NCBI GenBank assembly: GCA_028826165.1
Contig: JAPDFW010000060.1
Span: forward strand, 124,001-188,000
Direction of reading: 5' to 3'
DNA from: Anaeramoeba ignava BMAN
Taxonomy: Eukaryota; Protista; Anaeramoebae
DNA length: 64,000 nucleotides
Each line of letters opens with the position of its first letter. Positions within the stretch are counted from its first letter, which is position 1. The notes beneath the pieces were generated by a model that saw only the letters and a list, made by a program, of their open reading frames with translations, ran no database searches and was not told the origin of the DNA. The position numbers and the translations under genes are program-made. This document shows, in pieces, positions 19,198 through 58,702 of this stretch.

Positions 19198-21611
19198 TCA
19201 ACAACATGTTTTTTTCGTTTTTTTATTTTGTTTAGAATTATCATTTGAAAGAACTACAGAATTATTTGTTTCATTTCCACTTTCATTTTCACTTTCATTT
19301 TCATTTGTATTTTGATTTGGATTTTGATTATTTTTATTTTTATTTTTATTTTTATTTTTATTTTTTTGCAATTTTCTTTCTTTCAATTTTTCTGCAATCA
19401 TTTCAAAAATATTTTTAACATTTGTTCCATCTTTTGCGCTTGTTTTTGAAAAATTTTGAACTTGTTCTTTAAAAATGGACTTTTTATATTATAATTAAAT
19501 ATTTATAAATCAAATATTTATAAATTAAATATTTATAAATTAAATATTAATAAATTAAATATTATAAATTAATTATTTCTAAATTAAATATTTCTAAATT
19601 AAATATTTATAAATTAAATATTATAAATCAAATATTATAAATTAAATATTTCTAAATTAAATATTAATAAATTAAATATTAATAAATTAAATATTATAAA
19701 TCAAATATTATAAATTAAATATTTCTAAATTAAATATTAATAAATTAAATATTAATAAATTAAATATTTCTAAATTAAATATTATAAATTAAATATTTTT
19801 AAATTAAATATTTATAAATTAAATATTTATAAATTAATTATTTCTAAATTAAATATTAATAAATTAAATATTAATAAATTAAATATTTATAAATTAAATA
19901 TTTATAAATTAAATATTTATAAATTAAATATTAATAAATCATTTATAAATTAAATATTTTATAAATTAAATATTTATAAATTAAATATTTATAAATTAAT
20001 TATTTCTAAATTAAATATTTCTAAATTAAATATTTCTAAATTAAATATTAATAAAAATTAAATATTTATAAATTAAATATTATAAATTAAATATTTATAA
20101 ATTAAATATTATAAATTAAATATTTATAAATCAAATATTTATAAATTAATTATTTATAAATTATTTCTAAATTATTTATAAATTAAATATTTATAAATTA
20201 AATATTTATAAATTAAATATTAATAAATCAAATATTTATAAATTAATTATTTATAAATTATTTTAAATTATTTATAAATTAAATATTTATAAATTAAATA
20301 TTTATAAATTAAATATTAATAAATTAAATATTTATAATTAAATATTTATAAATTAAATATTTATAAACTAAATATTTATAAACTAAATATTTATAAATTA
20401 AATATTTATAAATTAAATATTTATAATTAAATATTTATAAATTAAATATTATAAATTAAATATTTATAATTTAAATATTATAAATCAAATATTTATAAAT
20501 TAAATATTTCTAAATTAAATATTATAAATTAAATATTTATAAATTAAATATTTATAAATTAAATATTATAAATTAAATATTTATAAATTAAATATTTATA
20601 AATTAATTATTTATAAATTAAATATTTCTAAATTAAATATTTATAAATTAAATATTTATAAATTAAATATTTTAAATTAATTATTTCTAAATTAAATATT
20701 TCTAAATTAAATATTTATAAATTAAATATTTATAAATTAAATATTAATAAATTATTAATAAATCATTTCTAAATTATCTATAAATATCATTTAATTTCTT
20801 GATGCTTTTTACATCAATTTCTTCTTGAACATTTTCAACTTGATCTGGAAGATCACATTTATTTCCTACAACAATAATTAATGAATCTTCATCACAATTA
20901 TTTTGAATTTCTCCAAAATAATATTCAAGTTCTTTAATTGATTTTTTTGAAGTTAAATCAAAAACAAGAATAAAAGCATTTGCATTTCTTTTTTTTTTTT
21001 AATATCAAAAAGTGGAACAAAATTTAATTTAATATTGAACTTAATATCGAACTTAAAATTGAACTTAAAATCTAAAAATTAATTCGAAAATCAAATCAAA
21101 TAAAATTACTTATAAATTGAAGAAGAAAGTTGCATTCTATATCTTTCTTGACCAGCTGTATCCCACTAAAAATCAATATAAATTTAACAAAAAATTTAAT
21201 TTAAATCCATTATTTATAAAAGAAAGCAAAAAAATTTTTTTTTTATACAATTTGAAGTCTAACTATTTTATCATCAATCATAACATCTTTTAGTTTCTAT
21301 TTTTGAATTTTAAATTTCAAAGAGAAAATTTTTTTTTGTTTGTTTTAAATTTTAATCAAAAAATAATTTCCAAAAAAAATAATTACAAAATCAACTCCAA
21401 TTGTTGGAATAGCTTTTGGAACAAAAGTGTCATCCTTAAATTAAAATTCCAATTAAATTTTCAAATAAAAAAAGGTTTATAAAAAAAGAATAAAAAAAAA
21501 AATTCAATAAATAAATCAATCAATAAATACAACATATCTAGTTATTAAACTTGTTTTCCCAACTCCAGAATCTCCAATAGCAACAACTTTAAATAAATAA
21601 TTATAACTCAT
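19198..21611 (-). CDS. Rab1-derived GTPase, array copy 1 (most canonical), 6 exons
   Basis: MSYNYLFKVVAIGDSGVGKTSLITRYV|DDTFVPKAIPTIGVDF|KLKDVMIDDKIVRLQI|WDTAGQERYRMQLSSSIYK|NANAFILVFD...GNKCD...|...KTSAK...KKTCC*; all introns GT-AG. Confidence 0.92.
19490..20785. repeat. ~15-nt AAATTAAATATTTAT minisatellite filling intron 5 (19480-20812) of Rab copy 1
   Basis: Direct reading. Confidence 0.9.
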
Positions 21612-21742
21612 TAAATTAAAAAAAAAGGGAAAAAAAATGAAAAAAGTTTTTGTTAAAAAAAAAATTATTTTTCATTAAAATTAAAATTAAAATAAAAATA
21701 AAAATTAAAATAAAAATTTTAAATTAATTTTAAATTTTCATT

Positions 21743-22792
21743 TTAACAACATTTTTGTTTCGTTCGGTTTTCTTGTTCGTTTTCTAAAGAAATTATTTTT
21801 GATTGTTGATTTCTTTCATTTTGTAAATCAAATGAATTAATATTTTTATTTAAATGATGTTTTGGTTGATTTTGTTTAAATTCTTTTGCAGTTTCATAAA
21901 ACAATTCATCAACATTTTTTCCATTTTTTGCACTTGTTTTAAAAAATCTAAACGGTTCATTTTTGAGAATATTCTAATCAAAATAAAAAATAAAAAATAA
22001 AATAAAATAAATTCCCTAAAAAAAAAATTTTTTTTGTTCCACTTTTTATTTTGAAACAAAAAATTTTTTACTTCCAATTTTTCTTTCAAATTTTCAATTT
22101 TGTTTTCAATAAGATCACTTTTATTCCCAACAATAACAATTAAAGGATCTTGAATATGACTATTTTCAATTTCTTTTAAATAATCACCAATTTCTTTCAA
22201 ACTATTTTCATTTGTTATATCAAAAACAATCAAAACAATATCTGCATTTCTTTATATTTTTTAATTTATAATTTATAAATTTTTTTGTTCCACTTTTTGG
22301 ATTAAAAATTTTTGATTTCAAATTAAATTTACTTATAAATTGAAGGAAGAAATGAATTCCTAAATCTTTCTTGACCTGCAGTATCCCACTTTTTTTAATT
22401 GAAAATAAATGAAAATAAATTAGAGATATTTTCAATTTTTTTCGGAAATAAATTTTTACAATTTGAAGTCGGATTGTTTGATTATCTATTTCAATATCTT
22501 TTGTTTTCTATTTTTTTATTTTAAAATTTTTTTTTTTTCATATTTTTTTTTTTGTAAAAATATTATTTACAAAATCAACTCCAATTGTTGGTTCTTTTTC
22601 GAAATTAAAAGTGTTATCCTTTTATTAAAGAATTTTAAATTGAAAAAGTGTTTAATTTTCTGATTTTTTTTTCTTTAAAAAAGAAATTTAAATAAATTAA
22701 TTAATAAATACAACATATCTATTAATTAAACTTGTTTTTCCAACATTTGCACTTCCAATAATTATAACTTTAAATAAATAATCAAAACTCAT
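21743..22792 (-). CDS. Rab1-derived GTPase, copy 2, 6 exons
   Basis: GSANVGKT|DNTFNFEKEPTIGVDF|KTKDIEIDNQTIRLQI|WDTAGQERFRNSFLPSIYK|...GNKSD|...TSAK...KQKCC*. Confidence 0.92.
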
Positions 22793-24322: not shown

Positions 24323-25488
24323 TCAACAACATTTTTTTTGAGATTTAGATTTATTTTTATCATTTGGATCTTTTTCATTTTGTAAAATAATATTATTATT
24401 TGAATTTTCTTCTTCTTTTTTTAAATAATGTTTTGGTTGATTTTCTGTAAATCTTTTTGCAATTTCATAAAATAATTCATTAACATTTGTTCCATCTTTT
24501 GCACTTGTTTTAAAAAATATAAATTTATCACCATTTAAAATTTCCTTTTATATTTAATTTTTAAAATTAAAATGAAAGAAGAAAATTTTTAATTTTTTTT
24601 TGTTCCACTTTTTTTTTTTAAAATTAAAATTAAAATTAAAATTAAATTTAAAATTTTTTTACTTTTATTTTTTCTTCAACATTTTCAAGTTGTTCTTCAA
24701 TAAGATCACTTTTATTTCCAACAATAACAATTAAAGGATTTGTTCTACAATTATTTTCAATTTCATTTAAAAAATCATCAATTTTATTTAAACTTTCTTC
24801 TTTTGTTAAATCAAAAACAATCAAAATAATATCAGCATTTCTTTATAATTTTTCAATTTATAAATTTATAAATTTTTTTTTAATAAAATGAATTATTTTG
24901 ATTTAAATTTAGAATTTACTTGTAAACTGAAGATGAAAATGAAATTGAATTTCTGTATATTTCTTGGCCTGCAGTATCCCACTTTGTTTTAAAAATTAAA
25001 TAATTAAAAATTTAAAATTCAAAATTTAATAAAAAATAATTTAATTTTAATTTAAATTTAAATTTATTTACAATTTGAAGTCTAACTATTTTTCCATCAA
25101 TTTCAATATCTTTTGTTTTCTTTTAATTTTAATTATTTTATTTTAATTATTTTATTTTTTAAATTTAATTTTAAAAAAATTTTCATTTTAAAAATTTAAA
25201 TTTGTTTTTGATAATAAAATATTATTTACAAAATCAATTCCAATTGTGGTTTGCTTGCTAACAGTAAAATTATCATCCTTTTTTTTTAATGATTTTGTTA
25301 TTAAATTTTGATTTTTTAAATGGAAAAAAAAACAGGAAAAAAAATGTTTAATTTTCTGATTTTTTTTTCTTTAAAAAAGAAATTTAAATAAATTAATTAA
25401 TAAATACAACATATCTTATCATTAAACTTGTTTTTCCAACATTTGCACTTCCAATGATTACAATTTTAAATAAATAATCAAAACTCAT
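24323..25488 (-). CDS. Rab1-derived GTPase, copy 4, 6 exons
   Basis: GSANVGKT|DDNFTVSKQTTIGIDF|...|WDTAGQEIYRNSISFSSSVYK|...|...QKKCC*. Confidence 0.9.
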
Positions 25489-27027: not shown

Positions 27028-28076
27028 TTAACAACATTTGATTTGAGGTTGAGGTTTATTTGTATCATTTGGATTTTCTGCATTTTGTAAAGTAATAATA
27101 TTTGAATTTTCTTCTTCTTTTTTTGGATTGTTTGGTTGACTTTCTTCTGTAAGTTTTTTTGCAATTTCATAAAATAATTCATTAACATTTGTTCCATCTT
27201 TTGCACTTGTTTTTACAAATTTGAATTCTCTTCCTTTTAAAATTTCCTTTTAAAATTTTGTATTTGAATAAAAAATAAAATTGAATAAATTGAATAATAA
27301 ATTAAATAGTTTTTTATCTCTTTTTTTTTAAATTGATTTTTTTTGTTCCACTTTTTTTTTAAATTTAAAATTAAAATTTTTTTTACATTTATTCTTTCTT
27401 CAACATTTCCATTTTCTTTTTCAATAAGATCACTTTTATTTCCAACAATAACAATTAAAGGATTTGTTCTACAATTATTTTCAATTTCATTTAAATAAGA
27501 ACCAATTTTATTTAAACTTTTTTCTTCTGTTAAATCAAAAACAATCATAAAAATATCAGCATTTCTTTATAATTTTTAAATTTATAAATTTATAAATTTT
27601 TTTTAATAAAATGAATTATTTTGATTTAAATTTATAATTTACTTGTAAATTGAAGATGAGAATGAAATTGAATTTCTGTATATTTCTTGACCTGCAGTAT
27701 CCCACTTTTTTAAAAAAATTAATTAAAAATTTTTCACTTTTTTTAATTTAAATTTTTTAATTTTATTTACAATTTGAAGTCTAACTATTTTTCCTTCAAT
27801 TTCAACATCTTTTGTTTTCTTTTAATTTTAAATTTTAATTAATTTTAATTTTAATTTTATATAATAAAGAATTGTTTACAAAATCAATTCCAATTGTGGT
27901 TTTTTTGCTAAAAATAAAATCGTCATCCTTTTTTTTTAATGATTTTGTTAATAAATTTGATTTTTTAATTAATAAATAAATTAATAAATAAATACAATAT
28001 ATCTTTTAATTAAACTCGTTTTTCCAACGTTTGCACTCCCAATAATTACAACTTTAAATAAATGATCAAAACTCAT
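27028..28076 (-). CDS. Rab1-derived GTPase, copy 6, 6 exons
   Basis: GSANVGKT|DDDFIFSKKTTIGIDF|...|WDTAGQEIYRNSISFSSSIYK|...|...PQIKCC*. Confidence 0.9.
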
Positions 28077-28151: not shown

Positions 28152-29188
28152 TCAACAACATTGATTTTGAGGTTTAGATTCATTTGTATTTTTTAAATTT
28201 TCTATATTTTTTAAACCAAAATTTTCTTTTTCTTTTTTTAAATGATGTTTTGGTTGAGTTTCTTTAAATGTTTTTGCAATTTCATAAAATAATTCATTAA
28301 CATTTGTTCCATCTTTTGCACTTGTTTTAAATAATTTCAATTCTCTTCCTTTTAAAATTTCCTTTTAAAATTTTGTATTTGAATAAAAAATAAAATTGAA
28401 TAAATTGAATAATAAATTAAATAGTTTTTTTATCTCTTTTTTTTTAAATTGATTTTTTTTGTTCCACTTTTTTTTTAAATTTAAAATTAAAATTTTTTTT
28501 ACATTTATTCTTTCTTCAACATTTCCATTTTCTTTTTCAATAAGATCACTTTTATTTCCAACAATAACAATTAAAGGATCTATTCTGCAATTATTTTCAA
28601 TTTCATTTAAATTAGAACCAATTTTATTTAAACTTTCTTCATTCATTAAATCAAAAACAACTATAAAAATATCTGCATTTCTTTTTGATTTTTCAATTTG
28701 ATTTTTTAAATATAATTTTTTTCAATTTAAATTATTTTGATTTAAATTTGAAATTTACTTATAAATTGAAGATGAGAATGAAATTTGAAATTTTTCTTGA
28801 CCTGCAGTATCCCACTTTTTTAAAAAAATTGATTAAAAATTTTTCACTTTTTTTTTTTAATTTTAATTTTTTTAATTTCATTTACAATTTGAAGTCTAAC
28901 TATTTTTCCTTCAATTTCAACATCTTTTGTTTTCTTTTAATTTTAAATTTTAATTAATTTTAATTTTAATTTTTATATAATAAAGAATTGTTTACAAAAT
29001 CAACTCCAATTGTTGATTTTTGGAAAGGAGTAAAAGTATCATCCTTTTTTTAATAATTATTTTATTAATAAATTTATTAATTAATTAATAAATTAAAAAT
29101 TAAATACAATATATTTTTTAATTAAACTTGTTTTTCCAACTCCTGCTGCTCCAATAAGTATAACTTTAAACATATAATCAAAACTCAT
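28152..29188 (-). CDS. Rab1-derived GTPase, copy 7, 6 exons
   Basis: GAAGVGKT|DDTFTPFQKSTIGVDF|...|WDTAGQEKFQISFSSSIYK|...|...PQNQCC*. Confidence 0.9.
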
Positions 29189-32481: not shown

Positions 32482-34186
32482 CTATTTGTTTTTATAAAGA
32501 CTGAAAACTGGAGGTTTGAATTTGAATGTTAAATTGTGAGAATTTGAAGATGTTGTTATTTTTAAATCTCCATTTTCTAAAATAGTTATATTTGTTTCTT
32601 TTTCTTTTAATTTTTCTTTTAATTTTTCTTTTTCTTTTTCTTTTTCTTTTTCTTTTTCTTTTTCTTTTTCTTTTTCTTTTTCTTTTTTTTTTGAACGAAA
32701 AGGATTTCTAAATTGGAATCCTCTTCTTGGTTTAGATTTATTTGTATCATTTGAATCTTCTGCATCTTCCAAAATAATGATTTGTGAATTATCTTGTTCA
32801 ATTTTTGGTTGATTTTCTTTAAGTTTTTTTGCAATAAATTCAAATAATTCATTAACATTTGTTCCATCTTTTGCACTTGTTTTTACAAATTTGAATTCTT
32901 TTCCTTTTAAAATTTCCTTTTAAAATTTTGTATTTGAATAAAAAATAAATTGAGTAAATTGAATAATAAATTAAATAGTTTTTTATCTCTTTTTTTTTAA
33001 ATTGATTTTTTTTGTTCCACTTTTTTTTTAAATTAAATTTTTATAAATAAATTTTTAATTAAATTTACTTTGATTTTTTCTTCAATATTTTCAATTTGAT
33101 CTTCAATAAGATCACATTTATTTCCAACAATAACAATTAAAGGTTCTGTTCTGAAGTTATATTCAATTTCTTCTATAAAATCATCAACTTCTTTAAGAGT
33201 ACCTTCAACTGTTAAATCAAAAACAATTATAAAACAACCTGTATTTCTTTTTAATTTTGATTTTAATTTTAATTTTGATTTTGATTTTGATTTTGATTTT
33301 TAATTTGAATTTGAATTTGATTTTGAATTTGATTTTAATTTTGATTTTGATTTTAATTTTGATTTTGATTTTGATTTTAATTTTAATTTATATTTTGATT
33401 TTGATTTTAAATTTGATTTTGATTTTGATTTTAATTTTAATTTTGATTTTAATTTTGATTTTTATTTTGATTTTGATTTTAATTTTGATTTTAATTTTGA
33501 TTTTAATTTTAATTTTGATTTTTATTTTGATTTTTATTTTGATTTTGATTTTGATTTTGATTTTGATTTTGATTTTTATTTTGATTTTGATTTTGATTTT
33601 AAATTTGAATTTGAAATAGATTTACTTATAAATTGAAGAAGTAAACGGAATTCTATAAGCTTTTGAACCTGAAGTATCCCACTTTAAATTAAAATTAAAA
33701 TTCATTTATAAAATTAAAATTAAAATTAAAATAAATTAATTTATAAAATTTAATTAGAAAGAAAAATATAAATTTATTTACAATTTGAAGTCGAACTTTT
33801 TTATTATCAATTTCTAAATCTTTGGATATCTATTTATTTTTGTATTTAAATTGGAAAAAAATTTTTTGTTATAAATTTTGGAATTAATTTATAAATTTAT
33901 TTTCAAAATTATTTCAGAATTTAATTAATTAATTTTAAATTATTTATTTACAAAATCAACTCCAATATTTCTAGGTCTAAAAGCTTCAAACATTCCATCC
34001 TATTTTTTAAATTAATTTTATTAATTAAAAATTGAATAAATTATTTTTTAAATTTGTAAATTAATTAATTAATAAAATAATAAAAGAAATAAAATAAATA
34101 TTTACAACATAGCGATCAATTAAATTTGTTTTTCCAACTCCTGCTGCTCCAACAAGAACAACTTTAAAAAGAAAATCAAAAGTCAT
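32482..34186 (-). CDS. Rab1-derived GTPase, copy 10: atypical (G2 T>N, G3 DTSGSK, no C-terminal Cys)
   Basis: GAAGVGKTN|DGMFEAFRPRNIGVDF|...|WDTSGSKAYRIPFTSSIYK|...GNKCD|...TSAK...(KE)n...FKFKPPVFSLYKNK*. Confidence 0.88.
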
Positions 34187-34305: not shown

Positions 34306-35998
34306 TTAACAACATCCTTGTTTTTTTTGTTTTATTTGTATTAAATCTGAATTTTTAATAACTTTTGATTGACTTAAATTATTTTCATTTTGATCTAAAC
34401 CAGTATTAATTTTTTTATGATGAAGATGTTTATTAACTTCATTTTTTTCTTTAAGTTCTTTTGCAATTCCATAAAATAATTCATTAACATTTGTTCCATC
34501 TTTTGCACTTGTTTTAAAAAATCTCAATTCTTTTCCTTTTAAAATTTCCTTTTGAAATTTTGTATTTGAATAAAAAATAAAATTAAATAAATTGAATATT
34601 AAATTAAATATTTTTTTATATTTTTGTTTTTAAATTGATTTTTTTTGTTCCACTTTTTTTTTAAATTAAATTTTTATAAATAAATTTTTAATTAAATTTA
34701 CTTTGATTTTTTCTTCAATATTTTCAATTTGATCTTCAATAAGATCACATTTATTTCCAGCAATAACAATTAAAGGTTCTGTTCTGCATTTATTTTCAAT
34801 TTCTTTTATATAATAATCAACTTCTTTAAGAGTACCTTCAACTGTTAAATCAAAAACAATTATTGCTATATCTGTATTTCTTTTTGATTTTGATTATGAT
34901 TTTGATTTTGATTTTGATTTTTGATTTTTGATTTTGATTTTAATTTTGATTTTGATTATGATTTTGATTTTAATTTTAATTTTGATTTTAATTTTAATTT
35001 TGATTTTGATTTTAATTTTAATTTTAATTTTAATTTTGATTTTGATTTTAATTTATTTTGATTTTAATTTTGATTTTTATTTTGATTTTAATTTTAATTT
35101 TAATTTTAATTTTGATTTTGATTTTAATTTATTTTGATTTTAATTTTGATTTTGATTTTGATTTTGATTTTGATTTTGATTTTGATTTTGATTTTGATTT
35201 TTATTTTGATTTTGATTTTGATTTTGATTTTAATTTTGATTTTGATTTTATTTTGATTTTGATTTTGAATTTGAATTTTAATTTTAATTTTGATTTTAAT
35301 TTTGATTTTGATTTTGATTTTAATTTTGATTTTGATTTTGATATTTTGATTTTGATTTTGATTTTGATTTTGATTTTAATTTTGATTTTGATTTTAATTT
35401 TGATTTTGATTTTAATTTTGATTTTGATTTTAATTTTAATTTTGATTTTGATTTTGATTTTAAATTTGAATTTGAAATAGATTTACTTATAAATTGAAGA
35501 AGTAAGTGGATTCCGATATTGTTCTTCACCTGCAGTATCCCACTTTAAATTAAAATTAAAATTAATTTATAAAATTAAAATTAATTTATAAAATTAAAAT
35601 TTAATTAGAAAGAAAAATATAAATTTATTTACAATTTCAAGTCGAACTTTTTTATTATCAATTTTTAAATCTTTGTATTTCTATTTATTTTTGTATTTAA
35701 ATTGGAAAAAAATTTTTTGTTATAAATTTCAGAATTTAATTAATTAATTTTAAATTATTTATTTACAAAATCAACTCCAACAGTTGTAGGTCTAAAAGCT
35801 TCATAGATTCCATCCTATTTTTTAAATTAATTTTATTAATTAAAAATTGAATAAATTATTTTTTAAATTTGTAAATTAATTAATTAATAAAATAAAAGAA
35901 ATAAAATAAATATTTACAATATATTTAATAATTAAACTTGTTTTTCCAACTCTTGGGCTTCCAATAAGAACAACTTTAAAATTAAAATCAAAACTCAT
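34306..35998 (-). CDS. Rab1-derived GTPase, copy 11 (catalytic Q>E)
   Basis: GSPRVGKT|DGIYEAFRPTTVGVDF|...|WDTAGEEQYRNPLTSSIYK|...|...KQGCC*. Confidence 0.9.
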
Positions 35999-36117: not shown

Positions 36118-37492
36118 TTAACAACATCCTTGTTTTTTTTGTTTTTTTTGTGTTAAATCAGAATTTTTAATAACTTTTGATTGATTTAAATTATTTTCAT
36201 TTTGATCTAAACCAGTATTAATTTTTTTATGATGAAGATTTTTATTAAATTCTTTTTTTTCTTTAAGTTCTTTTGCAATAAATTCAAATAATTCATTAAC
36301 ATTTATTCCATCTTTTGCACTTGTTTTAAAAAATCTCAATTCTTTTCCTTTTAAAATTTCCTTTTGAAATTTTATATTTGAATAAAAAATAAAATTGAAT
36401 AAATTAAATAATAAATTAAATACTTTTTTATCTTTTTGTTTTTAAATTGATTTTTTTTGTTCCACTTTTTTTTTAAATTAAATTTTTATAAATAAATTTT
36501 AATTAAATTTACTTTGATTTTTTCTTCAATATTTTCAATTTGATCTTGAATAAGATCACATTTATTTCCAACAATAACAATTAAAGGTTCTATTCTGCAA
36601 TTATCATCAATTTCTTTTATATAATAATCAACTTCTTTAAGAGTACCTTCAACTGTTAAATCAAAAACAATTATTGCTGTATCTGCATTTCTTTTTGATT
36701 TTGATTTTGATTTTGATTTTGATTTTGATTTTGATTTTGATTTTGATTTTGATTTTAATTTTGATTTTGATTTTGATTTTGATTTTGATTTTAATTTTGA
36801 TTTTGAATTTGATTTTGATTTTGATTTTAAATTTGATTTTGATTTTGATTTTGATTTTGATTTTGATTTTGATTTTAATTTTGATTTTGATTTTGATTTT
36901 AATTTTGATTTATATTTTGATTTTGATTTTGATTTTGATTTAGATTTTAAATTTGAATTTGAAATAGATTGCTTATAAATTTAAAGAAATTTGGATTCCG
37001 ATATTTGTTCTTCATTCAGTATCCCACTTTAAATTAAAATTAAAATTAAAATTCATTTATAAAATTAAAATTCATTTATAAAATTAAAATTTAATTAGAA
37101 AGAAAAATATAAATTTATTTACAATTTCAAGTCGAACACTTTTATTATCAATTTCTAAATCTTTGAATTTCTATTTATTTTTGTATTTAAATTGGAAAAA
37201 AATTTTTTGTTATAAATTTCAGAATTTAATTAATTAATTAATTTTAAATTATTTATTTACAAAATCAACTCCAACAGTTGTAGGTCTAAAAGGTTTAAAC
37301 ATTTCATCCTATTTTTTAAATTAATTTTATTAATTAAAAATTGAATAAATTATTTTTTAAATTTGTAAATTAATTAATTAATAAAATAAAAGAAATAAAA
37401 TAAATATTTACAATATATCTAATAATTAAACTTGTTTTTCCAACTCTTGGAGTACCAATAAGAACAACTTTAAAATTAAAATCAAAACTCAT
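36118..37492 (-). pseudogene. Rab1-derived GTPase, copy 12; exon 4 disrupted (stop codon, frameshift, GT>GC donor)
   Basis: Exons 1-3, 5 and 6 are intact (GTPRVGKT|DEMFKPFRPTTVGVDF...QGCC*). Exon 4 reads tgg gat act gaa TGA (stop at 37012-37014), is 54 nt versus 56 in copies 11 and 13, and its donor is gcaatc. It could be a local assembly error. Confidence 0.7.
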
Positions 37493-37682: not shown

Positions 37683-38972
37683 TTAACAACATCCTTGTTT
37701 TTTTTGTTTTATTTGTATTAAATCTGAATTTTTAATAACTTTTGATTGATTTAAATTATTTTCATTTTGATCTAAACCAGTATTAATTTTTTTATGATGA
37801 AGATGTTTATTAAGTTCTTTTTTTTCTTTAAGTTCTTTTGCAATAAATTCAAATAATTCATTAACATTTATTCCATCTTTTGCACTTACTTTAAATAATT
37901 TGAATTCTTTTCCTTGCGAAATTTCCTTTTGAAATTTTATATTTGAATAAAAAATAAAATTAAATAAATTAAATAATAAATTAAATACTTTTTTATCTTT
38001 TTTTTTTTAAATTGATTTTTTTTGTTCCACTTTTTTTTAAATTAAATTTTTATAAATAAATTTTTAATTAAATTTACTTTGATTTTTTCTTCAATATTTT
38101 CAATTTCTTTTTCAATAAGATCACATTTATTTCCAACAATAACAATTAAAGGATCTATTCTGCAATTATCATCAATTTCTTTTATATAATAATCAACTTC
38201 TTTAAGAGTACCTTCAACTGTTAAATCAAAAACAATTATTGCTGTATCTGCATTTCTTTTTGATTTTGATTTTGATTTTAATTTTGATTTTGATTTTGAA
38301 TTTGATTTTGATTTTAATTTTGATTTTGATTTTGAATTTGATTTCGATTTTAAATTTGATTTTGATTTTAATTTTTATTTTAATTTTGATTTTGATTTTG
38401 ATTTTGATTTTGATTTTGATTTTGATTTTGATTTTAAATTTGAATTTGAAATAGATTTACTTATAAATTGAAGAAGTAAGTGGATTCCGATATTGTTCTT
38501 CGCCTGCAGTATCCCACTTTAAATTAAAATTAAAATTCATTTATAAAATTAAAATTAAAATTAATTTATAAAATTAAATTAGAAAGAAAAATATAAATTT
38601 ATTTACAATTTCAAGTCGAACACCTTTATTATCAATTTCTAAATCTTTGAATTTCTATTTATTTTTGTATTTAAATTGGAAAAAAATTTTTTGTTATAAA
38701 TTTCAGAATTTATTTAATTAATTTTAAATTATTTATTTACAAAATCAACTCCAACAGTTGTAGTTCTAAAAGGTTTAAATATTGCATCCTATTTTTTAAA
38801 TTAATTTTATTAATTAAAAATTGAATAAATTATTTTTTAAATTTGTAAATTAATTAATTAATAAAATAAAAGAAATAAAATAAATATTTACAATATATTT
38901 AATAATTAAACTTGTTTTTCCAACTCTTGGGCTTCCGATAAGAACAACTTTAAAATTAAAATCAAAACTCAT
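37683..38972 (-). CDS. Rab1-derived GTPase, copy 13 (catalytic Q>E)
   Basis: GSPRVGKT|DAIFKPFRTTTVGVDF|...|WDTAGEEQYRNPLTSSIYK|...|...KVSAK...KQGCC*. Confidence 0.9.
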
Positions 38973-40504: not shown

Positions 40505-42373
40505 TTAACAACATTTATTTCGTTTTTTATTATTAAAATTATTATTATCATCATTATTTAAATCAACTTCTTTTAAATTTTCTTCTTTTAAATTTTCATT
40601 TTTATTTAATTTATTTTGTTTTATTACTCCATATTTTTTAGGATTTTCTTTAATCGTTTTTGCAATATAATAAAATAATTCATTAACATTTGTTCTTTCT
40701 TTTGCACTTGTTTTAAATAATTTAAATTCTTTTTCATTTGAAATTTGCTATTAAATATTATTTTTAAAAAGAATAAATTTTTTAAAATTAAATAATTTTT
40801 TTGTTCCACTTTTTTATTAATTAATATTTTTAAATTAATTTTGATTTTGATTTTAATTTACTTTCACTTTTTCTTCTACATTTTCTATTTGATTTTCAAT
40901 AAGATCACATTTATTTCCAACAAGAACAATTAATGGATTTTTTCTACAATTATTTTCAATTTCTGTAAAATAATACTCAAGTGAATTCACTGTTTCTTTA
41001 TTTGTTAAATCAAAAACAACTATTAAAACATTTGTGTTTCTATTTAAAAAAATTTAATCATTTAATTTAAATTTTAATTTTGATTTTGATTTTAATTTTA
41101 ATTTTGAATTTGAATTTGAATTTGATTTTGATTTTAATTTTAATTTTGATTTTGATTTTGATTTTGATTTTGATTTTGATTTTGATTTTGATTTTGATTT
41201 TGATTTTGATTTTGATTTTGATTTTGATTTTAATTTTAATTTTAATTTTAATTTTGATTTTGATTTTGATTTTGATTTTGATTTTGATTTTAATTTTGAT
41301 TTTGATTATTTTGATTTTTGATTTTGATTTTGATTTTAATTTTGATTTATATTTTGATTTTGATTTTAATTTTGATTTTGATTTTAATTTTGATTTTGAT
41401 TATTTTAATTTTGATTTTGATTTTGATTTTGATTTTAATTTTAATTTAAATTTTAATTCTGATTTTGATTCTGATTTTTGATTTTGATTTTTGATTTTGA
41501 TTTTAATTTTAATTTTAATTTTAATTTTAATTTTAATTTTAATTTTGATTTTAATTTTAATTTTAATTTTGATTTTAATTTTGAATTTAATTTTAATTTT
41601 AATTTTGATTTTAATTTTGATTTTGATTTTAATTTTGATTTTGATTTTGATTTTGATTTTAATTTTGATTTTGATTTTGATTTTAATTTTGATTTTAATT
41701 TTGATTTTGATTTTGATTTTGATTTTAATTTTGATTTTAATTTTGATTTTAATTTTGATTTTTATTTTGATTTTGATTTTGATTTTGATTTTAATTTAGA
41801 TTTTGATTTTAATTTTGATTTTGATTTTGATTTTAATTTTGATTTAAATTTTGATTTTAATTTTAATTTAAATTTTAATTCTGATTTTGATTCTGATTTT
41901 GATTTTGATTTACTTATAAATTGAAGAAGAAAGCGAAATATGAAATTTTTCTTGACCTGCAGTATCCCACTATTAATTATTTAATTTAAATAAAATATTT
42001 TATAAATTAAATAAATATTCTTCAATAATTAAATAATTCATTACAATTTGAAGTCTAAAAGTTGAATCTTCAATTTCAACATCTTTTGTTTTCTAAAAAA
42101 TTAAAAGGAAAAAAAATTCCAAAAAAAAATTGGAAAAAAACTGAAAATATCAAGAAATAAAATTACATAATCAATTCCAATAGTTGAATCTTTTTCTGGA
42201 ATAAAAATATCATCCTTTTCAAATAAATTAAAAAATTAAAATAAAAAAATTAAATTTTTTTCTTTCTTTCTTTTCTTTCTTTCTAAATTTACAATATATC
42301 GTTGAATTAAACTTGTTTTTCCAACTCCTGAAGCTCCAACTAAAATTGTTTTACATAAAAAATCAAAACTCAT
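40505..42373 (-). CDS. Rab1-derived GTPase, copy 15 (intron 4 expanded by TTTTGA repeat)
   Basis: GASGVGKT|DDIFIPEKDSTIGIDY|...|WDTAGQEKFHISLSSSIYK|...|...RNKCC*. Confidence 0.9.
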
Positions 42374-50217: not shown

Positions 50218-51715
50218 TTAACAACATTTCTTTTTTTTTGGAACTGATGATTCTATTGTAATAATATTTTGTGGAATTTCTTCTTTTTTTTCTTTTTTTG
50301 GTTGTTTTTTTGGTTTTCTTTCTATAATTGTTTTGGCAACAAATTCAAATACTTTATCTACATTTGTTCCATCTTTTGCACTTGTTTTATCAAAACTGAA
50401 ATTGTTTTGAATAAGTTTCTGTTTAAAATTTTAAATATAATTTTTTTTCCGATTTTAATTTTAATTTTTAATTTTTAATTTTAAATATAATTTTTTTTCC
50501 GATTTTAATTTTAATTTTAATTTTTAATTTTAAATATAATTTTTTTTCCGATTTTAATTTTAATTATATTTTTATTTTTAATTTTAATATTTTTACTCTT
50601 AATTGTTCTTCTGGATTTTCTATTTCAATTTCATCAACAAGATCACTTTTATTTCCAATAAAAGAAAGTAAAATATCTGGTGAACAATTTTGATTAATTT
50701 CAACTAAAAAACGACTTAGATCTTCTAAACTTTTTTTATCTGTTAAATCAAAAACAAGAATAAAAGCATCTACACTTCTATTTTTTTCATTAAATCCACA
50801 AATAATAAATATTTTGGAAATATGTATTAATTAAAATTTTTTGTTACTTATAAACCGAGAAATTGAGTGCATTTGTATATCTTTCTTGACCTGCAGTATC
50901 CCACTATTAAATCAATTATTTAAATCAATTAAATTAAATTAAATCAAATTAAATTAAATTAAATCAAATCAAATTAAATCAATTATTTAAATTAAATCAA
51001 ATCAAATCAAATTAAATTAAATCAATTAAATCAATCAATTATTTAAATCAAATCAAATCAAATCAAATTAAATTAAATCAAATTATTTAAATTCAAATTA
51101 AATTAAATCAATTATTTAAATTAAATCAAATCAAATTAAATTAAATTAAATCAAATCAAATTAAATTAAATTAAATCAAATTAAATCAATTTAAATCAAA
51201 TTAAATCCAAATTAAATCCAAATTAAATCCAAATTATTTAAATTATTTAAATCAATCAAATTAAATCAAATTAAATTAAATCAAATCAAATCAAATCCAA
51301 ATTATTTAAATTATTTAAATCAAATAAATTATTTAAATCAATTAAATTAAATCAAATTTAAAAATTCTTCAAAAACTTACAATTTGTAATTGAACTTGCT
51401 TATCAAATAAAATTAGATTTTTTGTTCTCTTAAATTTAAATTTAAATCCAAAAATTAAAAAAAAAATTTAAATTGAATTAAAAATTTAAAAATTAAAAAT
51501 TGAATTTACAAAATCAAGTCCTAACGTTGTTGGTTGATTATATTCAAAAGTTTCATCCTTTTATTTTTTAATTAATTTATAAAAAATTTTTCCAAATTAA
51601 AAAATTTAATAATTTTAAAAAAAATTTTATTTACAACATATCGTAAAATTAAACTTGATTTCCCAACACAAGGAGGTCCAATCAGTGCAATTTTAATAAG
51701 ATAATCAAAACTCAT
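50218..51715 (-). CDS. Rab1-derived GTPase, copy 20 (intron 3 filled with pentamer repeat)
   Basis: GPPCVGKS|DETFEYNQPTTLGLDF|...|WDTAGQERYTNALNFSVYK|...GNKSD|...KKCC*. Confidence 0.9.
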
Positions 51716-51833: not shown

Positions 51834-53990
51834 ATGAATTTTTGGAAAGCAATTAAAAAAAATGATTTTCAAACTTTAAAATTATTGATTGAAAAAGGAA
51901 TTGATATTAATTCAAAAAAAACTTATAATAAAACAGCTTTACATTATGCTTGTCAATATAATTCAATTGAAATTATCAAATATTTAATTGAAAAAGGTAT
52001 TGAAATCAATGCAAAAACTTATCACAATGAAACAGCTTTGCATTATGCTTTTAAATATAATTCATCACTAGAAATAATTGAGTATTTGATTTCAAAAGGA
52101 CTTGATCCAAATGCAAAAAATTATCACAATGAAACAGCTTTGCATTTTGCTTGTAAATATAATTCATCACTAGAAATAATTGAGTATTTGATTTCAAAAG
52201 GACTTGATCCAAATGCAAAAACATTCATAAATGAAACAAATATCCATTTAGTTTGTGAAAATGAAAATACAAAATCATCAATTGAAATTATCAAATATTT
52301 GATTTCAAAAGGAATTGATATCAACGCAAAAACAAATCAAAATAAAACAGCTTTACATTATATTTTCCAAAAAAATCCATCATTTGAAATTATTCAGTGT
52401 TTAATTGAAAATGGAATTGAAATCAATGCAAAAACTCATGAAAATGAAACAGCTTTACATTTTGTTTGTAAATATAATTCCTTCGAAATGATCAGATATT
52501 TAATCGAAAAAGGAGCAGATATCAATGCAAAAACAAATAGAAACCAAACAGCTTTACATTTTTGCTGTCAATACGAACTAAAATCAGAAATAATTGAGTA
52601 TTTGATTTCAAAAGGAGCTGATCCAAATGCAAAAACAGATGAGGATGAAACACCTCTTCATATTTGTTGCCAAAATGAATCACTTAGAACTATTCAAATA
52701 CTAATTGAAAAGGGAGCTGATCCAAATTCAACAGCAAAATACAAAGAAACTCCTATTCATATTGCTTGTCAAAAAAATTATTTTGAGATTATCAAATATT
52801 TGATTGAAAAGGGAGCAAATGTCAAAGCAAAAGCAAATGGAAACCAAACAACTTTGCATTATGCTTGCCAAAATAAAAACGCATCAACTCAAGTTATCAA
52901 ATATTTACTCCAGAAAGGAATTGATATCAACTCAAAAACTTATGGAAGTAAAACTGCTCTTCATGTTGCATGTCAAAGTTCATCAAATAAAATTATTAAG
53001 TTGTTAATAGAAAATGGAGCTGATATTAATTGCCAGGATTTCGATGGAATTACTCCTCTTTCCTTATCAATCCAAAATTCAAATCTAAAACTAACAAAGT
53101 TGTTATTGATGAATGATGCAAATATTCTGAAACTACGGAAACAAGAAATCACAAATCAAATTATTCTTCTATTTTCTCAAATTTATTCTTTTAATGAGGA
53201 TTTACATAATTTGTTGTACTCAAACGACAATTTCGCAGATTTGCAAATCAAATCAAAAGATTATTCCAAATTTCAAGTTCATAAATTGATTCTTTTGGCA
53301 AGATTTGATAATAATGAAACAAATTTACAAAAATTTATCAATATTTGCAATCAAAAACCAAAAAAAGAAATTGAGATTGCTTTGAATTTTCTTTATACAG
53401 GTTTTCCAAATTTTTCCCAATTCCAAAAGAAAATTGACAAAAAAAATCAAAATCAAAATCAAAATCAAAATCAAAATCCAAAAAAAACAAAAACAAAAAG
53501 AAAATCATTTAATCAGAAAATTTTAAAACAAAAACAAAAAGAAGAATTAATCAAAGAAAATGAAATGGAAATGGAAAATTTTTTCAAAGAAATTGGATTT
53601 GATTCAAAATGGATTGAATTAAAAAAAGGAAGAAAAGGAATAATAAAAGATTTTGATAAATTATATCAAGATGATTCAAAAAAAGATTTTAGAATAATTA
53701 TTGATGAAAAAGAAATCAAGGCTCATAAATTGATTTTGATATTAAGAAGTGATTTATTTAAAGGAATGTTTCAATTAAATGTGAACGATTCATCAAATCA
53801 AGTTCATGATTATTCAAGAAAATCATTTGAAACAATTAATCAATTGATTTATTTTCTTTATCATGATAAATTTAATAATGAAAAAGAAATTTTAAAAAAA
53901 ATCAAAAAAGAAGAATTTGAAGAATTAAAAGATTATTATCAATTAAATCCAAATTCAATAATTGATTTATTTTTAATGAAAGAAAATTGA
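51834..53990 (+). CDS. Ankyrin-repeat (~12-13 repeats) + two BTB/POZ-like domain protein, intronless
   Basis: Repeated TALHYAC...IIKYLIEKG.DINAK units; BTB-like ADLQIKSKDYSKFQVHKLILLARF and KDFRIIIDEKEIKAHKLILILRSDLFKGMF...LIYFLY. Confidence 0.92.
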   Translation: MNFWKAIKKNDFQTLKLLIEKGIDINSKKTYNKTALHYACQYNSIEIIKYLIEKGIEINAKTYHNETALHYAFKYNSSLEIIEYLISKGLDPNAKNYHNETALHFACKYNSSLEIIEYLISKGLDPNAKTFINETNIHLVCENENTKSSIEIIKYLISKGIDINAKTNQNKTALHYIFQKNPSFEIIQCLIENGIEINAKTHENETALHFVCKYNSFEMIRYLIEKGADINAKTNRNQTALHFCCQYELKSEIIEYLISKGADPNAKTDEDETPLHICCQNESLRTIQILIEKGADPNSTAKYKETPIHIACQKNYFEIIKYLIEKGANVKAKANGNQTTLHYACQNKNASTQVIKYLLQKGIDINSKTYGSKTALHVACQSSSNKIIKLLIENGADINCQDFDGITPLSLSIQNSNLKLTKLLLMNDANILKLRKQEITNQIILLFSQIYSFNEDLHNLLYSNDNFADLQIKSKDYSKFQVHKLILLARFDNNETNLQKFINICNQKPKKEIEIALNFLYTGFPNFSQFQKKIDKKNQNQNQNQNQNPKKTKTKRKSFNQKILKQKQKEELIKENEMEMENFFKEIGFDSKWIELKKGRKGIIKDFDKLYQDDSKKDFRIIIDEKEIKAHKLILILRSDLFKGMFQLNVNDSSNQVHDYSRKSFETINQLIYFLYHDKFNNEKEILKKIKKEEFEELKDYYQLNPNSIIDLFLMKEN

Positions 53991-54113
53991 AAAATTGATA
54001 TTTTTGTTGTTTTTTGAAAAAAATGAAAATATTTTTATTAAAGAGAAAAAAGAAAAAAAAAGAACAAAAAAAATATTTATCATTTTTTTTTTACTGAAAG
54101 AAAATTAAAATAA

Positions 54114-56081
54114 TCAAAAAATTTGGCAGCAATCTTTCTTTTTTCCTTTTTGTTTCTGATTTTTATTATTAAGAGAATTATTTTCTGTTTCATTTTTTTC
54201 ATTATCAAAAACAACGATTGGTTTATCTAATTGATCATTATTTTGTGATTGAGATTTTTTAAAAAGAGATTCAGCAATGAAATGAAATAATTCATTTACA
54301 TTACTTCCATTTTTTGCGCTTGTTTTAAAATGTTGAAGTTCTTGACCTTTTGTATATTTCTATTTTTTTTCCGATTTTAATTTTCAAAACGAATTTTAAT
54401 TTTAATTTTAATTTTAATTTTGATTTTAATTTTAATTTTAATTTTAATTTTAATTTTAATTTTAATTTTAATTTTAATTTTAATTTTAATTTTAATTTTA
54501 ATTTTCATTTTAATTTTCATTTTAATTATTTTAAATATTAATTTTATACCATTAATTCTTCTTCAGGATTTTTAATTTTTGAATCAAGATCTGATTTATT
54601 TCCTGCAACAATAATTAATATATTTTCAGAACAATTTTGTTCAATTTCTCTAAAAAAATATTCTAATTCTTGTATACTGTCTTCACTTGTTAAATCATAA
54701 ACAAGAATAAAAGCTTCTGCATTTCTTTTATTTTTCAAATTAAATTTGAAATTGAAATTGATTTAGAAATTGATTTAGAAATTGATTTAGAAATTGATTT
54801 AGAAATTGATTTAGAAATTGATTTAGAAATTGAAATTGAATTAGAAATTGATTTAGAAATTGAAATTGATTTAGAAATTGATTTAGAAATTGATTTAGAA
54901 ATTGAAATTGATTTAGAAATTGAAATTGAAATTGATTTAGAAATTGATTTTGAAATTGAAATTGATTTAAAAATTGAAATTGATTTAAAAATTGATTTAG
55001 AAATTGAAATTGAAATTGAAATTGAAATTGATTTAGAAATTGAAATTGATTTAGAAATTGAAATTGATTTAAAAATTGATTTAGAAATTGATTTAGAAAT
55101 TGATTTAGAAATTGATTTAGAAATTGATTTAGAAATTGATTTAGAAATTGATTTAGAAATTGAAATTGATTTAGAAATTGATTTAGAAATTGATTTAGAA
55201 ATTGATTTTGAAATAGAAATTGATTTAGAAATTGAAATTGAAATTGAAATTGAAATTGAAATTGATTTAGAAATTGAAATTGATTTAAAAATTGAAATTT
55301 ATTTAGAAATTGATTTAGAAATTGATTTAGAAATTGAAATTGATTTTGAAATTGATTTAGAAATTGATTTAGAAATTGATTTAGAAATTGATTTAGAAAT
55401 TGAAATTGATTTAGAAATTGATTTAGAAATTGATTTAGAAATTGAAATTGATTTAGAAATTGATTTAGAAATTGAAATTGATTTAGAAATTGATTTAAAA
55501 ATTAAAATTGATTTTGAAATTGAAATTGATTTAGAAATTGATTTTGGAATTGATTTAGAAATTGATTTTTAAATGGTAATTGATTTCAACTACCGATAAA
55601 TAGAAGAAGTAAAAGGAACTCTATAAACTTCTTGACCAGCAGTATCCCACTAATTAAATGTAAAATAAATAAAAATTAAGAAACTAAAAAGAAAAAAAAA
55701 GTAATTAATTAATTCATTCAAATTACAAGTTGAAGTCTAATTGTTTTTTCATCAACAAGAACATCTTTTGTTCTCTAAATTAAATTTCATTTAATTTTTT
55801 AATTTAATTTTTTCATTTAATTTAATTTAAATTAAATTGAATTGAATTTTTTAATCCAAATTTACAAAATCAACTCCAATTGTTGAAACATCTTGATTTT
55901 GAAAAGTATTATCCTTTTAAATTATTAAAAAAAATGATTAAAAAAAATTAAAATAGAAATTTAAATTTAAATTTACAACAAATTTTCTAATTAAACTTAC
56001 AACAAATTTTCTAATTAAACTTGTTTTGCCAACTTGTGAAGCTCCAAAAATAACAACTTTAAATAATGAATGGAAAGTCAT
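54114..56081 (-). CDS. Rab1-derived GTPase, copy 21 (CCQIF tail; duplicated exon-1 donor)
   Basis: GASQVGKT|DNTFQNQDVSTIGVDF|...|WDTAGQEVYRVPFTSSIYR|NAEAFILVYD...GNKSD|...TSAK...KDCCQIF*. Confidence 0.9.
54745..55570. repeat. 12-nt GAAATTGATTTA minisatellite filling intron 4 of Rab copy 21
   Basis: Direct reading. Confidence 0.92.
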
Positions 56082-56241
56082 TTAAATAATAATAATAAAA
56101 AGAAAAGGAAAAAAATGAAAAAAAAAAATTGAAAACTTTTCTTTTTATTCTTTTATCTTTATTTTAAAAAAAAAATATTTATTTATAAAAAAAAAACTGA
56201 AAAGTAAAAAAAAATTTTTTTTTTGATTAATCCAAAAAAAT

Positions 56242-58702
56242 TTAAAAAACGGAACAACATTTTTTGAATTTGGATTTGATTTTTTTTTTTGGTTCATTAT
56301 TATGATCTTGTTCAATAAAATCAGGTGGAAGATCTTTAAGAGGATCAAATGGAATAAATTCACTTGGATCAATTTCTCTTATTGGATAAGGTGTGAATGT
56401 TGATTTTGGTGTTGGATTTGTTACCATTTTCAAATAAACTGATGATGCAATGTAATTGAATAGTTCATTTATATTATCTCCATTTTTTGCACTTGTTTTA
56501 AAATGTTTGAAAAAAAATTCTTTGCAGCATGTCTAAATAAAAATAATTAAATCAAAAATATTTAAATCAAAATATTTAAATAAAAATATATTTAAATCAA
56601 TATATTTAAATTCAATATATTTAAATCAATATATTTAATTAAATATTATTTAAATCAAATATATAAATCAATATATTTAAATCCAAATTATTTAAATTAA
56701 TATATTTAAATCAAATATTTAAATTAATATATTTAAATCAATATATTTAAATTAATATATCTAAATCAAATATATTTATAAATCAAATATATTTAAATCA
56801 ATATATTTAAATCAACATATTTAAATCAAAATATTTAAATAAAAATATATTTAAATCAATATATTTAAATCAATATTTAAACTCAAATATTTAAATCAAA
56901 ATATTTAAATCAATATATTTAAATCAATATATTTAAATCAAATATATAAATCAATATATTTAAATCAATATTTAAATTAATATATTTATAAATCAAATAT
57001 AATTAAATCAAATATATTTAAATCAAATATTTAAATTCAAAATATTTAAATCAAATATATTTAAATCAATATTTAAATCAATATATTTAAATCAAAAATA
57101 TTTAAATCAAAAATATTTAAATCAAAATATTTAATCCAAAATAATTAAATCAAAATAATTAAATCAATATATTTAATTAAATATTATTTAAATTAATATA
57201 TTTAAATCAAATTAAATCAAATATTTAAATCAATATATTTAAATCCAAAATATTTAAATCAAATATATTTGGAAATACTTGAAGTTCTTCTTCTGGATTA
57301 TCAATTTTTGAATCAAGATCTGATTTATTTCCAGCAACAACAATAACAACATCTTTAGGACAATTTTCTTGAATTTCTTTAAAATAATATTTTAATTCTT
57401 CAATACTATCTTTGTTTGTTAAGTCATAAACAAGAATAAAAGCTTCTGCTTTTCTAATTTTTATAAGAAATAAATAAAAAATCAATTATTTTTGGAATTT
57501 TTATAAAAATTTTCTAAAAAAATCAACCTATAAATGGAAGAAGTAAATCGTTCTCTAAAAACTTCTTGACCTGAAGTATCCCACTATTTATTTCAATTTT
57601 TCATATGAATTTTTGATTAAATTATTGATTAAATTATTTGAAAATTGATAAAAATTTTTTACAAGTTGAAGTCTAACAGTTTTTGTTTTTATTTGAAGAT
57701 CTTTTGTTCTCTAAAAATTAAATCAAATTAAATCAAAATATTTAAATCAATATATTTAAATTAAATTAAATCAAATATTTAAATCTAAAATATTTAAATC
57801 AAAAATATTTAAATCAAATATATTTAAATCAAATTAAATTAAATTAAATCAAATATTTAAATCTAAAATATTTAAATCAAAAATATTTAAATCCAAAATA
57901 TTTAAATCCAAAATATTTAAATCCAAAATATTTAAATCCAAAATATTTAAATCCAAAATATTTAGATCCAAAATATTTAAATCCATATTTAAATCAACAT
58001 ATTTAAATCAAAATATTTAAATCAATTTGAAAATTAAATATTTTTAAATCAATTTGAATTAATATATTTAAATCCAAAATATTTAAATCCAAAATATTTA
58101 AATCAAAATATTTAAATCCAAAATATTTAAATCAAAAATATTTAAATCCAATATATTTAGATCCAAAATATTTAAATCCATATTTAAATCAACATATTTA
58201 AATCAATATATTTAAATCAATTTGAAAATTAAATATTTTTAAATCAAAATCAAATTGAAAATTAAATTAGAAATGTCAAGTCATGCCAAAATTAAATTGT
58301 GATCTATTTCTAAAATTAAATCAATTTTAAATTTATCAAAGAATCCAAATCAGCTTTAAATGATCAAAAGGAGGTAATTTGGATTAAAAAAAATCAAAAA
58401 GAAATATTTTTTTTATCGAGAGATTAAAAAAATAAAATTTACAAAATCAACACCAATTGTTGGAACACCTTTGTTTTTAAAAATATCATCCTTTTTAAGA
58501 AAATTTAGATCAATTAACCAAAAATTAAAATTAAAATTTAAATTTAAATAGATTTTACAATGATTTTTTTAATTGAAAAATTCTTTTTTTATTTTTATTT
58601 AATTTGTTTAATTAAATTTACAACAAATTTTATAATTAAACTTGTTTTTCCAACTTGTGAAGCTCCAAAAATAACAACTTTTGAAATTAAATCAAATGAC
58701 AT
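56242..58702 (-). CDS. Rab1-derived GTPase, copy 22 (Pro-rich hypervariable tail, CCSVF; introns 2 and 5 filled with AAATATTTAAATC-type repeats)
   Basis: GASQVGKT|DDIFKNKGVPTIGVDF|RTKDLQIKTKTVRLQL|WDTSGQEVFRERFTSSIYR|KAEAFILVYD...GNKSD|...TSAK...KKCCSVF*. Confidence 0.9.

Follow-up and report, generated by a model that had tools for sequence, protein, structure and literature searches.

A tandem array of 22 Rab GTPase genes, arranged head-to-tail on the minus strand, occupies about 40 kb (positions 19198–58702) of the stretch of the Anaeramoeba ignava BMAN genome analysed here (64,000 nucleotides (nt) of contig JAPDFW010000060.1 in assembly GCA_028826165.1, positions 124,001 to 188,000; hereafter, the window). 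Taken together, the evidence is probably best explained by a real and annotated tandem array that belongs to a Rab subfamily found only in A. ignava, is of Rab1-type ancestry, has grown by local duplication, has exchanged sequence by gene conversion and encodes copy-specific switches. As markers of organelle identity, Rab GTPases are usually said to evolve slowly; at this one locus, with 22 copies in 40 kb, a Rab lineage seems to exchange patches among its members while the loop that meets its partners outpaces the adjacent introns. If the pattern holds, it offers a testable case of new membrane identities or regulator pairs arising, in a species whose cell biology centres on phagocytosis and on a symbiosome filled with bacteria.

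Gene models, public record and proteins

A motif scan of the minus strand between 19198 and 58744 returned TSAK and GNKxD 22 times each, DTAGQ/E 21 times and T[IV]G[VIL]DF 18 times, and 22 first exons with a P-loop and an MSFD-like start were recognized. One copy, R16, was read by hand as the reference, and its protein was aligned to every unit with a purpose-written dynamic-programming aligner, so that each gene model is a spliced protein-to-DNA alignment; the copies are numbered from R01 (ATG at 58702) to R22 (stop at 19198). Six exons are present in 21 of the 22 genes (81, 48, 48, 56/59/62, 175/178/181 and 189–435 nt, exon 2 being 45 nt in R05), with intron phases of 0, 0, 0, 2 and 0 and GT..AG borders in all introns; R11 has the same exons as the other copies, with exon 4 broken. 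From each stop to the next ATG the distance is 59–277 nt, except for one interval of 2398 nt that spans a plus-strand ankyrin-BTB gene. The initial annotation had proposed 22 minus-strand six-exon genes with gaps of 59–277 nt, and the motif scan and the spliced models bear this out exactly. Twenty of the 22 copies are apparently intact, the exceptions being R11, a pseudogene, and R13, which has lost its prenylation cysteines.

Each of the 20 short intergenic gaps has to accommodate the 3' end signals of one gene and the promoter of the next, or else neighbouring genes are co-transcribed. The window is extremely AT-rich (G+C content 8–39% per 2-kb interval, mostly below 20%), and in the array the long introns, which reach 1333 nt, are largely AT-rich microsatellites such as (AAAATC)n, examples being 19480–20812 (intron 5 of R22), 33247–33625 and 41040–41913. 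Variation in intron length among the copies is mostly a change in repeat number.

Full-length public proteins were reached by searching 1.8 billion proteins with an exon 5 profile and by two follow-up searches. Because 16 of the 22 gene models are residue-for-residue identical to public A. ignava proteins, their exon boundaries are independently validated. The spacing of the accessions KAJ5076538.1 (R21), KAJ5076556.1 (R03) and KAJ5076558.1 (R02) fits 20 genes, one intervening gene and two more, and the same layout of 20, a gap and two is seen in the run of locus tags M0811_06117–06136, 06138 and 06139, which Supplementary Data 6C of PMC11550330 places among the "UNCLASSIFIED" Rabs of strain BMAN (231 Rabs, of which seven were called Rab1 and 187 were unassigned). 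The array family lies outside those seven Rab1 genes, and a scattered member of it, L004, appears in the same unclassified list as M0811_03399. The public entries for the array carry mixed automatic names (ypt1, rab-30, rab-35, rab-13 and rab-3a). The array had been described at first as hidden, which is wrong, all 22 genes being present in GenBank and in Supplementary Data 6 of PMC11550330; the Rab expansion, studied there on the same genome, and the genes themselves are already published. In the part of the literature covered by our searches we did not find a description of the compact arrangement in tandem, of the link to Rab1 through introns, of the mosaics left by conversion or of the positive selection confined to switch I: the word "tandem" is absent from the main text of PMC11550330, those of its passages on Rab that were covered report no selection test, and a search of the literature for positively selected tandem Rab arrays returned nothing relevant.

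That the array is an artefact of collapsed or duplicated haplotypes is extremely improbable. It lies inside a contig of 569,623 nt, each copy has its own intron lengths and repeats, and even the closest copies differ by 7% in protein. Identity in the G domain ranges from 44 to 93%, with neighbours most alike in the identity matrix, so that the copies are diverged paralogues.

Spliced transcripts are represented for two or three copies by two A. ignava open reading frames (ORFs) that the EukProt database took from a Trinity assembly. The first 66 residues of one (P0285) are identical to R19 across the junctions of exons 1–4, and the last 145 residues of the other (P0281) mix R18-like and R20-like sequence across the junctions of exons 4–6. 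Both change to a different Rab paralogue at WDTAGQE, and they are therefore assembly chimeras. Rab counts from de novo transcriptomes of A. ignava need corresponding care, since such assemblies join different paralogues at the conserved WDTAGQE.

The array proteins match PF00071 over their full length (143–168 bits). All five G-motif classes are present in 21 copies (G1 GxxxxGK[ST], G3 DxxG, G4 NKxD and G5 SAK were tested), and 20 copies have an open frame, all splice sites, G1 and G3–G5, and terminal cysteines intact. An AlphaFold2 model of R21 (mean predicted local distance difference test score 78.8) has small-GTPase topology (six strands, five helices); its residues 176–206, just before the terminal CC, form a disordered tail. 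In a Foldseek search with this model, the top eight matches were all Rab1 structures (target TM-scores 0.85–0.90) and the top 50 were all Rabs. The terminal CC claimed for the family is found in 19 copies; in R01 and R02 three more residues follow it (CCxxx), and R13 lacks cysteines at its end.

Motifs of the RabF1, RabF2 and RabF5 types (TIGVDF, RLQIWDTAGQE and IVFDLT) are conserved across the copies. Pereira-Leal and Seabra are said to have defined, in 2000, the Rab-family motifs RabF1 as IGVDF, RabF2 as KLQIWDTAGQE and RabF5 as LVYDIT-like; RabF3 is RFRSIT-like and RabF4 is YYRGA. In place of RabF3 and RabF4 the array proteins have variable replacements such as KFQISFSS and SIYKNA, with one to three additional residues, and this lowers confidence that they use the general Rab regulators in the standard way. 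Residues 2–4 of the P-loop are variable as well (DSG, SAN, NSN, AAG, ASG, SPR, TPR, PPC, SAF and ASQ), and the GDSGVGK form that had been noted in the first copy in window order, R22, occurs as GDSGVGKT in that copy only. Switch II reads, for example, KFQISFSSSIYKNAD, against RFRTITSSYYRGA in Rab1, the array form being one to three residues longer, and the catalytic Gln has been lost from three copies (replaced by Glu in R10 and R12 and by Ser in R13). The first Tyr of the Rab1 motif YYRGA is Ile or Val in every array copy, and the switch I pentapeptide (residues 32–36) is unique in nearly every copy. Whereas the switch regions of 16 Rab1 orthologues from plants, kinetoplastids, euglenids and one nematode are invariant or nearly so, as many as nine or more different amino acids occur in a single column among the 21 array copies compared. 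The early suggestion that fold and prenylation are kept while binding surfaces vary agrees with these observations, in that the fold, the nucleotide motifs and the cysteines are retained and the P-loop, switch I, switch II and tail differ.

Family membership and Rab1 descent

When the exon 5 profile was run over the whole assembly, it scored 90–109 bits on the 22 array copies and 67–85 bits on eight scattered loci, seven of which have the same six-exon plan or a form of it with exon 4 split into 13 + 43 nt. In a maximum-likelihood tree, 21 array copies and seven scattered genes form one clade with support of 100/99, not a set of unrelated ancient Rab subfamilies; R01 and R02 group with scattered genes, and the remaining copies follow largely in array order. 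Searches with R21 and R02 gave at least 186 bits within the A. ignava family and at most 140 bits elsewhere, with no A. flamelloides protein among the matches listed. The best matches outside A. ignava (P0287, P0291 and P0348) were rejected as orthologues, lacking the switch II signature of the family. The array and the seven scattered genes are, as far as sequence comparison goes, a single A. ignava-specific Rab family. Among scattered loci, L006, at a contig end (G000:C68:1-4920), is a degraded partial copy of the member L003 (public counterpart P0159, 106 amino acids (aa)). In several Rab genes, namely L003 (C68), L004 (C137), L050 (C2) and L051 (C71), the WDTAG codons lie on a 13-nt micro-exon (TGGGATACTGC.G), followed by an exon of 40 or 43 nt.

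The call that this family is Rab1-derived is made because of gene structure. The canonical Rab1 gene of A. ignava (P0078) has exons of 52/35/48/48/228/192 nt; one of its introns interrupts the P-loop, and the others precede DD, follow IGVDF, precede WDTAG and lie 12 codons ahead of TSAK. In its paralogues P0061 and L051 the exons measure 58/35/48/48/13+40/175/192 nt, and these two and a third Rab1 paralogue, P0001, also carry a phase-2 intron between YYR and GA. All five array introns are matched in position and phase in P0078, P0061 and L051 combined, that is, the three introns for which a Rab1 match had been claimed at the outset (before DD, after IGVDF and before WDTAG) and the other two, within the same genome. 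Two Rab8-like genes share two of the five, those before DD and before WDTAG, and a Rab18-like group shares one. Three introns (after IGVDF, phase 2 between YYR and GA, and 12 codons before TSAK) are found only in the Rab1 clade among the four groups examined.

Four points tell against this origin. Intron positions were compared in three other Rab groups only. The best matches among solved structures lead by 1–4 bits and vary by copy among Rab1, Rab35 and Rab10 (R21, Rab1B 136.3 against Rab8A 132.3 bits; R02, Rab1a 131.7 against Rab35 131.1; R03, Rab10 119.1 against Ypt1 118.1). In the protein tree the family does not join Rab1 and stands as a separate clade on a backbone that is not resolved. 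Forcing it to group with Rab1 costs 26.6 log-likelihood units, with p = 0.055 in the approximately unbiased (AU) test. Two comparisons were set aside: the exon 5 profile against solved structures, as a test of subfamily, did not separate the Rab subfamilies, and the top PF00071 matches in the genome proved to be Ras, Rap and Rac genes, which were kept as outgroup only.

These points leave some room for another origin, either from a member of the Rab1/8/10/13/35 group other than Rab1 or from an old Rab specific to Anaeramoeba; the shared introns would then be ancestral to that group as a whole. We rate this as a distinctly lesser possibility. The borderline AU test and the tree backbone would allow it, as would the Rab10 match of R03, the near tie of Rab1 and Rab35 for R02, the two introns shared with Rab8-like genes, and the fact that an OrthoFinder analysis left the array genes unclassified (PMC11550330). 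It is opposed by the three introns confined to the Rab1 clade and by the sequence and fold searches with R21, in both of which Rab1 comes first. Rab1 switch I and II sequences are not kept in the array copies. On the gene structures, descent from Rab1 appears rather likely, and the family is better called Rab1-derived than filed as a member of Rab1. The Rab1 origin first proposed is favoured by the introns and by narrow best matches and left unplaced by the tree. If it is correct, intron positions would supply a probable Rab1 origin for about 29 of the 187 unclassified Rabs, where protein trees fail.

Gene conversion and selection in switch I

A nearest-neighbour analysis, carried out segment by segment, revealed mosaic copies. 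In R17, introns 2 and 5 are 98–99% R16-like and intron 4 is 99% R18-like; in R13, exon 1 is 95% R14-like and lies between flanks that are 97–100% R10/R12-like. Judged from these tracts, the mosaics are products of gene conversion or unequal exchange.

Site models were fitted with a purpose-written GY94-F3x4 implementation without a recombination term, whose M0 log-likelihood of -5713.77 compares with -5713.76 from IQ-TREE. Under M1a, 54% of codons have a ratio of nonsynonymous to synonymous rates (omega) of 0.13 and the rest have omega 1. Under M2a, 2.6% of codons have omega 5.9 (likelihood-ratio test (LRT) against M1a 46.2, p = 9e-11), with a posterior probability of 1.00 at codons 33–35. The signal was also found with the tree of exons 1–3 alone (LRT 28.4, p = 7e-7, sites 33–36) and in the 13 youngest copies (LRT 15.0, p = 5e-4). 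In the R21 model the selected codons fall in switch I, on the loop that joins helix 1 to strand 2. An independent comparison of eight close pairs found that, in six of them, exon 2 has diverged further than the two introns beside it: R18 and R20 differ at 8/48 positions in exon 2 against 2/235 in the flanking introns (p = 1.4e-5), and R10 and R13 at 8/48 against 1/189 (p = 1.3e-5). From these results we find positive selection, apparently confined to three or four residues of switch I. Two earlier measures were abandoned, namely pairwise Nei-Gojobori dN/dS values of 2–3, rejected as composition-biased since F3x4 likelihood puts most pairs below 1, and the comparison of dN with whole-gene intron divergence, which is confounded by mosaic histories and was replaced by that of an exon with its own flanking introns.

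Several observations count against the explanation preferred here. The overall omega under M0 is 0.23, and exons 4–5 and exon 6 gave no signal of positive selection. Gene conversion is clearly active here, and site models are known to give inflated results under it. With 94% A or T at third codon positions, synonymous rates are hard to estimate. Transcript support consists of the two chimeric Trinity ORFs, which touch R19 and R18/R20 only.

Accordingly weighed must be the view that the copies are redundant duplicates drifting under relaxed constraint in a duplication-prone AT-rich region, the selection signal being an artefact of conversion, composition or alignment. The 46% of codons at omega = 1 under M1a would fit such drift, as would the evident mosaicism, the pseudogene R11, the missing prenylation site of R13, the catalytic Gln lost three times, and nearby degenerate Rho-like GTPase arrays, which suggest a region that duplicates readily. 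However, 20 copies keep their frame, splice sites, G1 and G3–G5 motifs and terminal cysteines, over half of the codons stand at omega of about 0.13, and the signal returns at the same three or four codons whichever tree or subset is used; moreover, an exon 2 several-fold more diverged than both flanking introns is impossible by neutral drift. We regard drift as an unlikely account of the whole. The initial annotation had also proposed birth-and-death diversification like that of an immune locus, and this was partly supported only, by the R11 pseudogene, the conversion mosaics and the site-limited positive selection.

In the preferred reading, an ancestral Rab1-type gene would have been duplicated repeatedly in place to form the array, and gene conversion would have swapped patches between the copies. 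The intact copies are predicted to be geranylgeranylated switches, alternating between guanosine triphosphate (GTP) and guanosine diphosphate on a membrane, and would differ mainly in the switch I loop (32–36), P-loop positions 2–4, the first half of switch II and the C-terminal targeting tail. Each would likely answer to its own set of regulators and effectors, with differences in membrane or in timing. GTP binding, prenylation, copy-specific partners and a link to the phagosome or symbiosome are all putative.

A more specific proposal is that of a host repertoire for recognition or escape, in which switch I of a Rab1-derived switch has been remodelled in conflict or dialogue with bacteria, and the copies mark, protect or decoy compartments: they might escape or soak up bacterial effectors that modify Rab1, or tell symbiont from prey compartments. 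We consider this improbable and offer it as a lead only. The positive selection lies in switch I, a surface used by regulators and effectors, and the Tyr of YYRGA that every array copy has replaced by Ile or Val is, by the numbering as read, one that we take to be the residue modified with adenosine monophosphate in PDB entry 3nkv. Candidate partners are intracellular bacteria that secrete effectors, such as Legionellales, or the residents of the symbiosome. A Legionellales symbiont with effector-like adenylyltransferase proteins occurs in the related A. pumila. Anaeramoeba, according to PMC11550330, houses sulfate reducers in a symbiosome. Against this, Legionellales are not reported from A. 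ignava, and co-evolution with the expanded set of host regulators would be expected to leave the same pattern.

Neighbourhood and comparison with known systems

The features of the array are given in Table 1. Two intronless, divergent arrays of Rho-like GTPase genes flank the window on the same contig (L052, G000:C61:108500-114500, and L053/L054, G000:C61:203800-231000), with six copies in one and at least 17 in the other, CAAX ends CITN and CILN, and degenerate G3 motifs (WDPTGGE, WDSGHTSD and FDTARN). The Rab array therefore lies within a small-GTPase super-cluster of about 130 kb. An intronless Ras-type GTPase gene at 13660–14238 on the minus strand (192 aa, ending in CFII, PF00071 193.6 bits) is unrelated to the Rab array. 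The window further contains an LRR and PP2C phosphatase gene (299–2380, minus strand), a dual-specificity phosphatase gene with a long (ENxL)n repeat (9397–11130, plus strand) and an RRM protein gene (15990–18998, minus strand), all three with long low-complexity Asn/Gln/Glu repeats.

Table 1. Genes of the Rab array and the gene that interrupts it, in order along the minus strand (window positions)
Feature	Position	Strand	Basis
R01, Rab gene, 232 aa, ends CCSVF	56242..58702	-	Spliced model; identical to public protein P0388
R02, Rab gene, 217 aa, ends CCQIF	54114..56081	-	Equals P0127 = KAJ5076558.1
Ankyrin-repeat and BTB gene, 718 aa, interrupts array	51834..53990	+	ORF; Pfam Ank and BTB matches
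R03, Rab gene, 204 aa, P-loop GPPCVGKS	50218..51715	-	Equals P0132 = KAJ5076556.1
R04, Rab gene, 208 aa	48392..50114	-	Equals P0389
R05, Rab gene, 213 aa, exon 2 shorter by one codon	46361..48259	-	Equals P0279
R06, Rab gene, 208 aa	44994..46301	-	Equals P0280
R07, Rab gene, 205 aa	42651..44876	-	Equals P0284
R08, Rab gene, 217 aa	40505..42373	-	Spliced model
R09, Rab gene, 209 aa	39073..40356	-	Equals P0278
R10, Rab gene, 217 aa, P-loop GSPRVGKT, catalytic Gln replaced (DTAGEE)	37683..38972	-	Spliced model and alignment
R11, pseudogene: exon 4 in-frame TGA, several indels, GT-to-GC donor	36118..37492	-	Alignment to R10, R12
R12, Rab gene, 217 aa, DTAGEE	34306..35998	-	Spliced model
R13, 281 aa, no C-terminal cysteines, DTSGSK for DTAGQE, tail runs into Glu-Lys repeat	32482..34186	-	Spliced model and alignment
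R14, Rab gene, 198 aa	30554..32280	-	Equals P0276
R15, Rab gene, 218 aa	29345..30443	-	Equals P0271
R16, Rab gene, 206 aa, hand-read reference copy	28152..29188	-	Sequence read; equals P0275
R17, Rab gene, 211 aa, mosaic of R16-like and R18-like tracts	27028..28076	-	Equals P0277; nearest neighbour per segment
R18, Rab gene, 211 aa	25682..26834	-	Equals P0274
R19, Rab gene, 212 aa; residues 1-66 exact in transcript-derived P0285 (EukProt)	24323..25488	-	Equals P0272
R20, Rab gene, 210 aa	22981..24127	-	Equals P0273
R21, Rab gene, 213 aa, copy folded by AlphaFold2	21743..22792	-	Equals P0126 = KAJ5076538.1
R22, Rab gene, 229 aa, sole canonical GDSGVGKT P-loop, last intron 1333 nt	19198..21611	-	Spliced model

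With Rab1/Ypt1, including the A. ignava proteins P0078, P0061 and P0001, the array proteins share the fold, G1–G5, IGVDF, the LQIWDTAGQE core and the C-terminal CC. Identity to Rab1 is only about 40%, however, and the Lys of KLQIWDTAGQE is replaced, mostly by Arg. Almost every copy has a pentapeptide of its own where Rab1 has TESYI in switch I, and the array genes lack the intron that Rab1 has in its P-loop.

Large lineage-specific Rab families are known from Trichomonas, Entamoeba and ciliates, and Rab1 variants from Naegleria. The array resembles these in having many paralogues outside the ancestral subfamilies, in a phagocytic host with elaborate endomembranes. It is different from them in forming one 40-kb block with a six-exon plan, conversion among the copies and selection in switch I only, and our literature search found no paper that combines a compact array, a six-exon plan, conversion and switch I selection.

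Major histocompatibility complex (MHC) class I genes and plant resistance-gene clusters are birth-and-death families under diversifying selection. The array is like them in that its copies lie in tandem, include a pseudogene and exchange patches, in that its introns are more alike than the exon for the recognition surface, and in that a few sites have omega above 1. Unlike them, it encodes cytosolic GTPase switches instead of receptors, and the selected patch comprises three or four residues.

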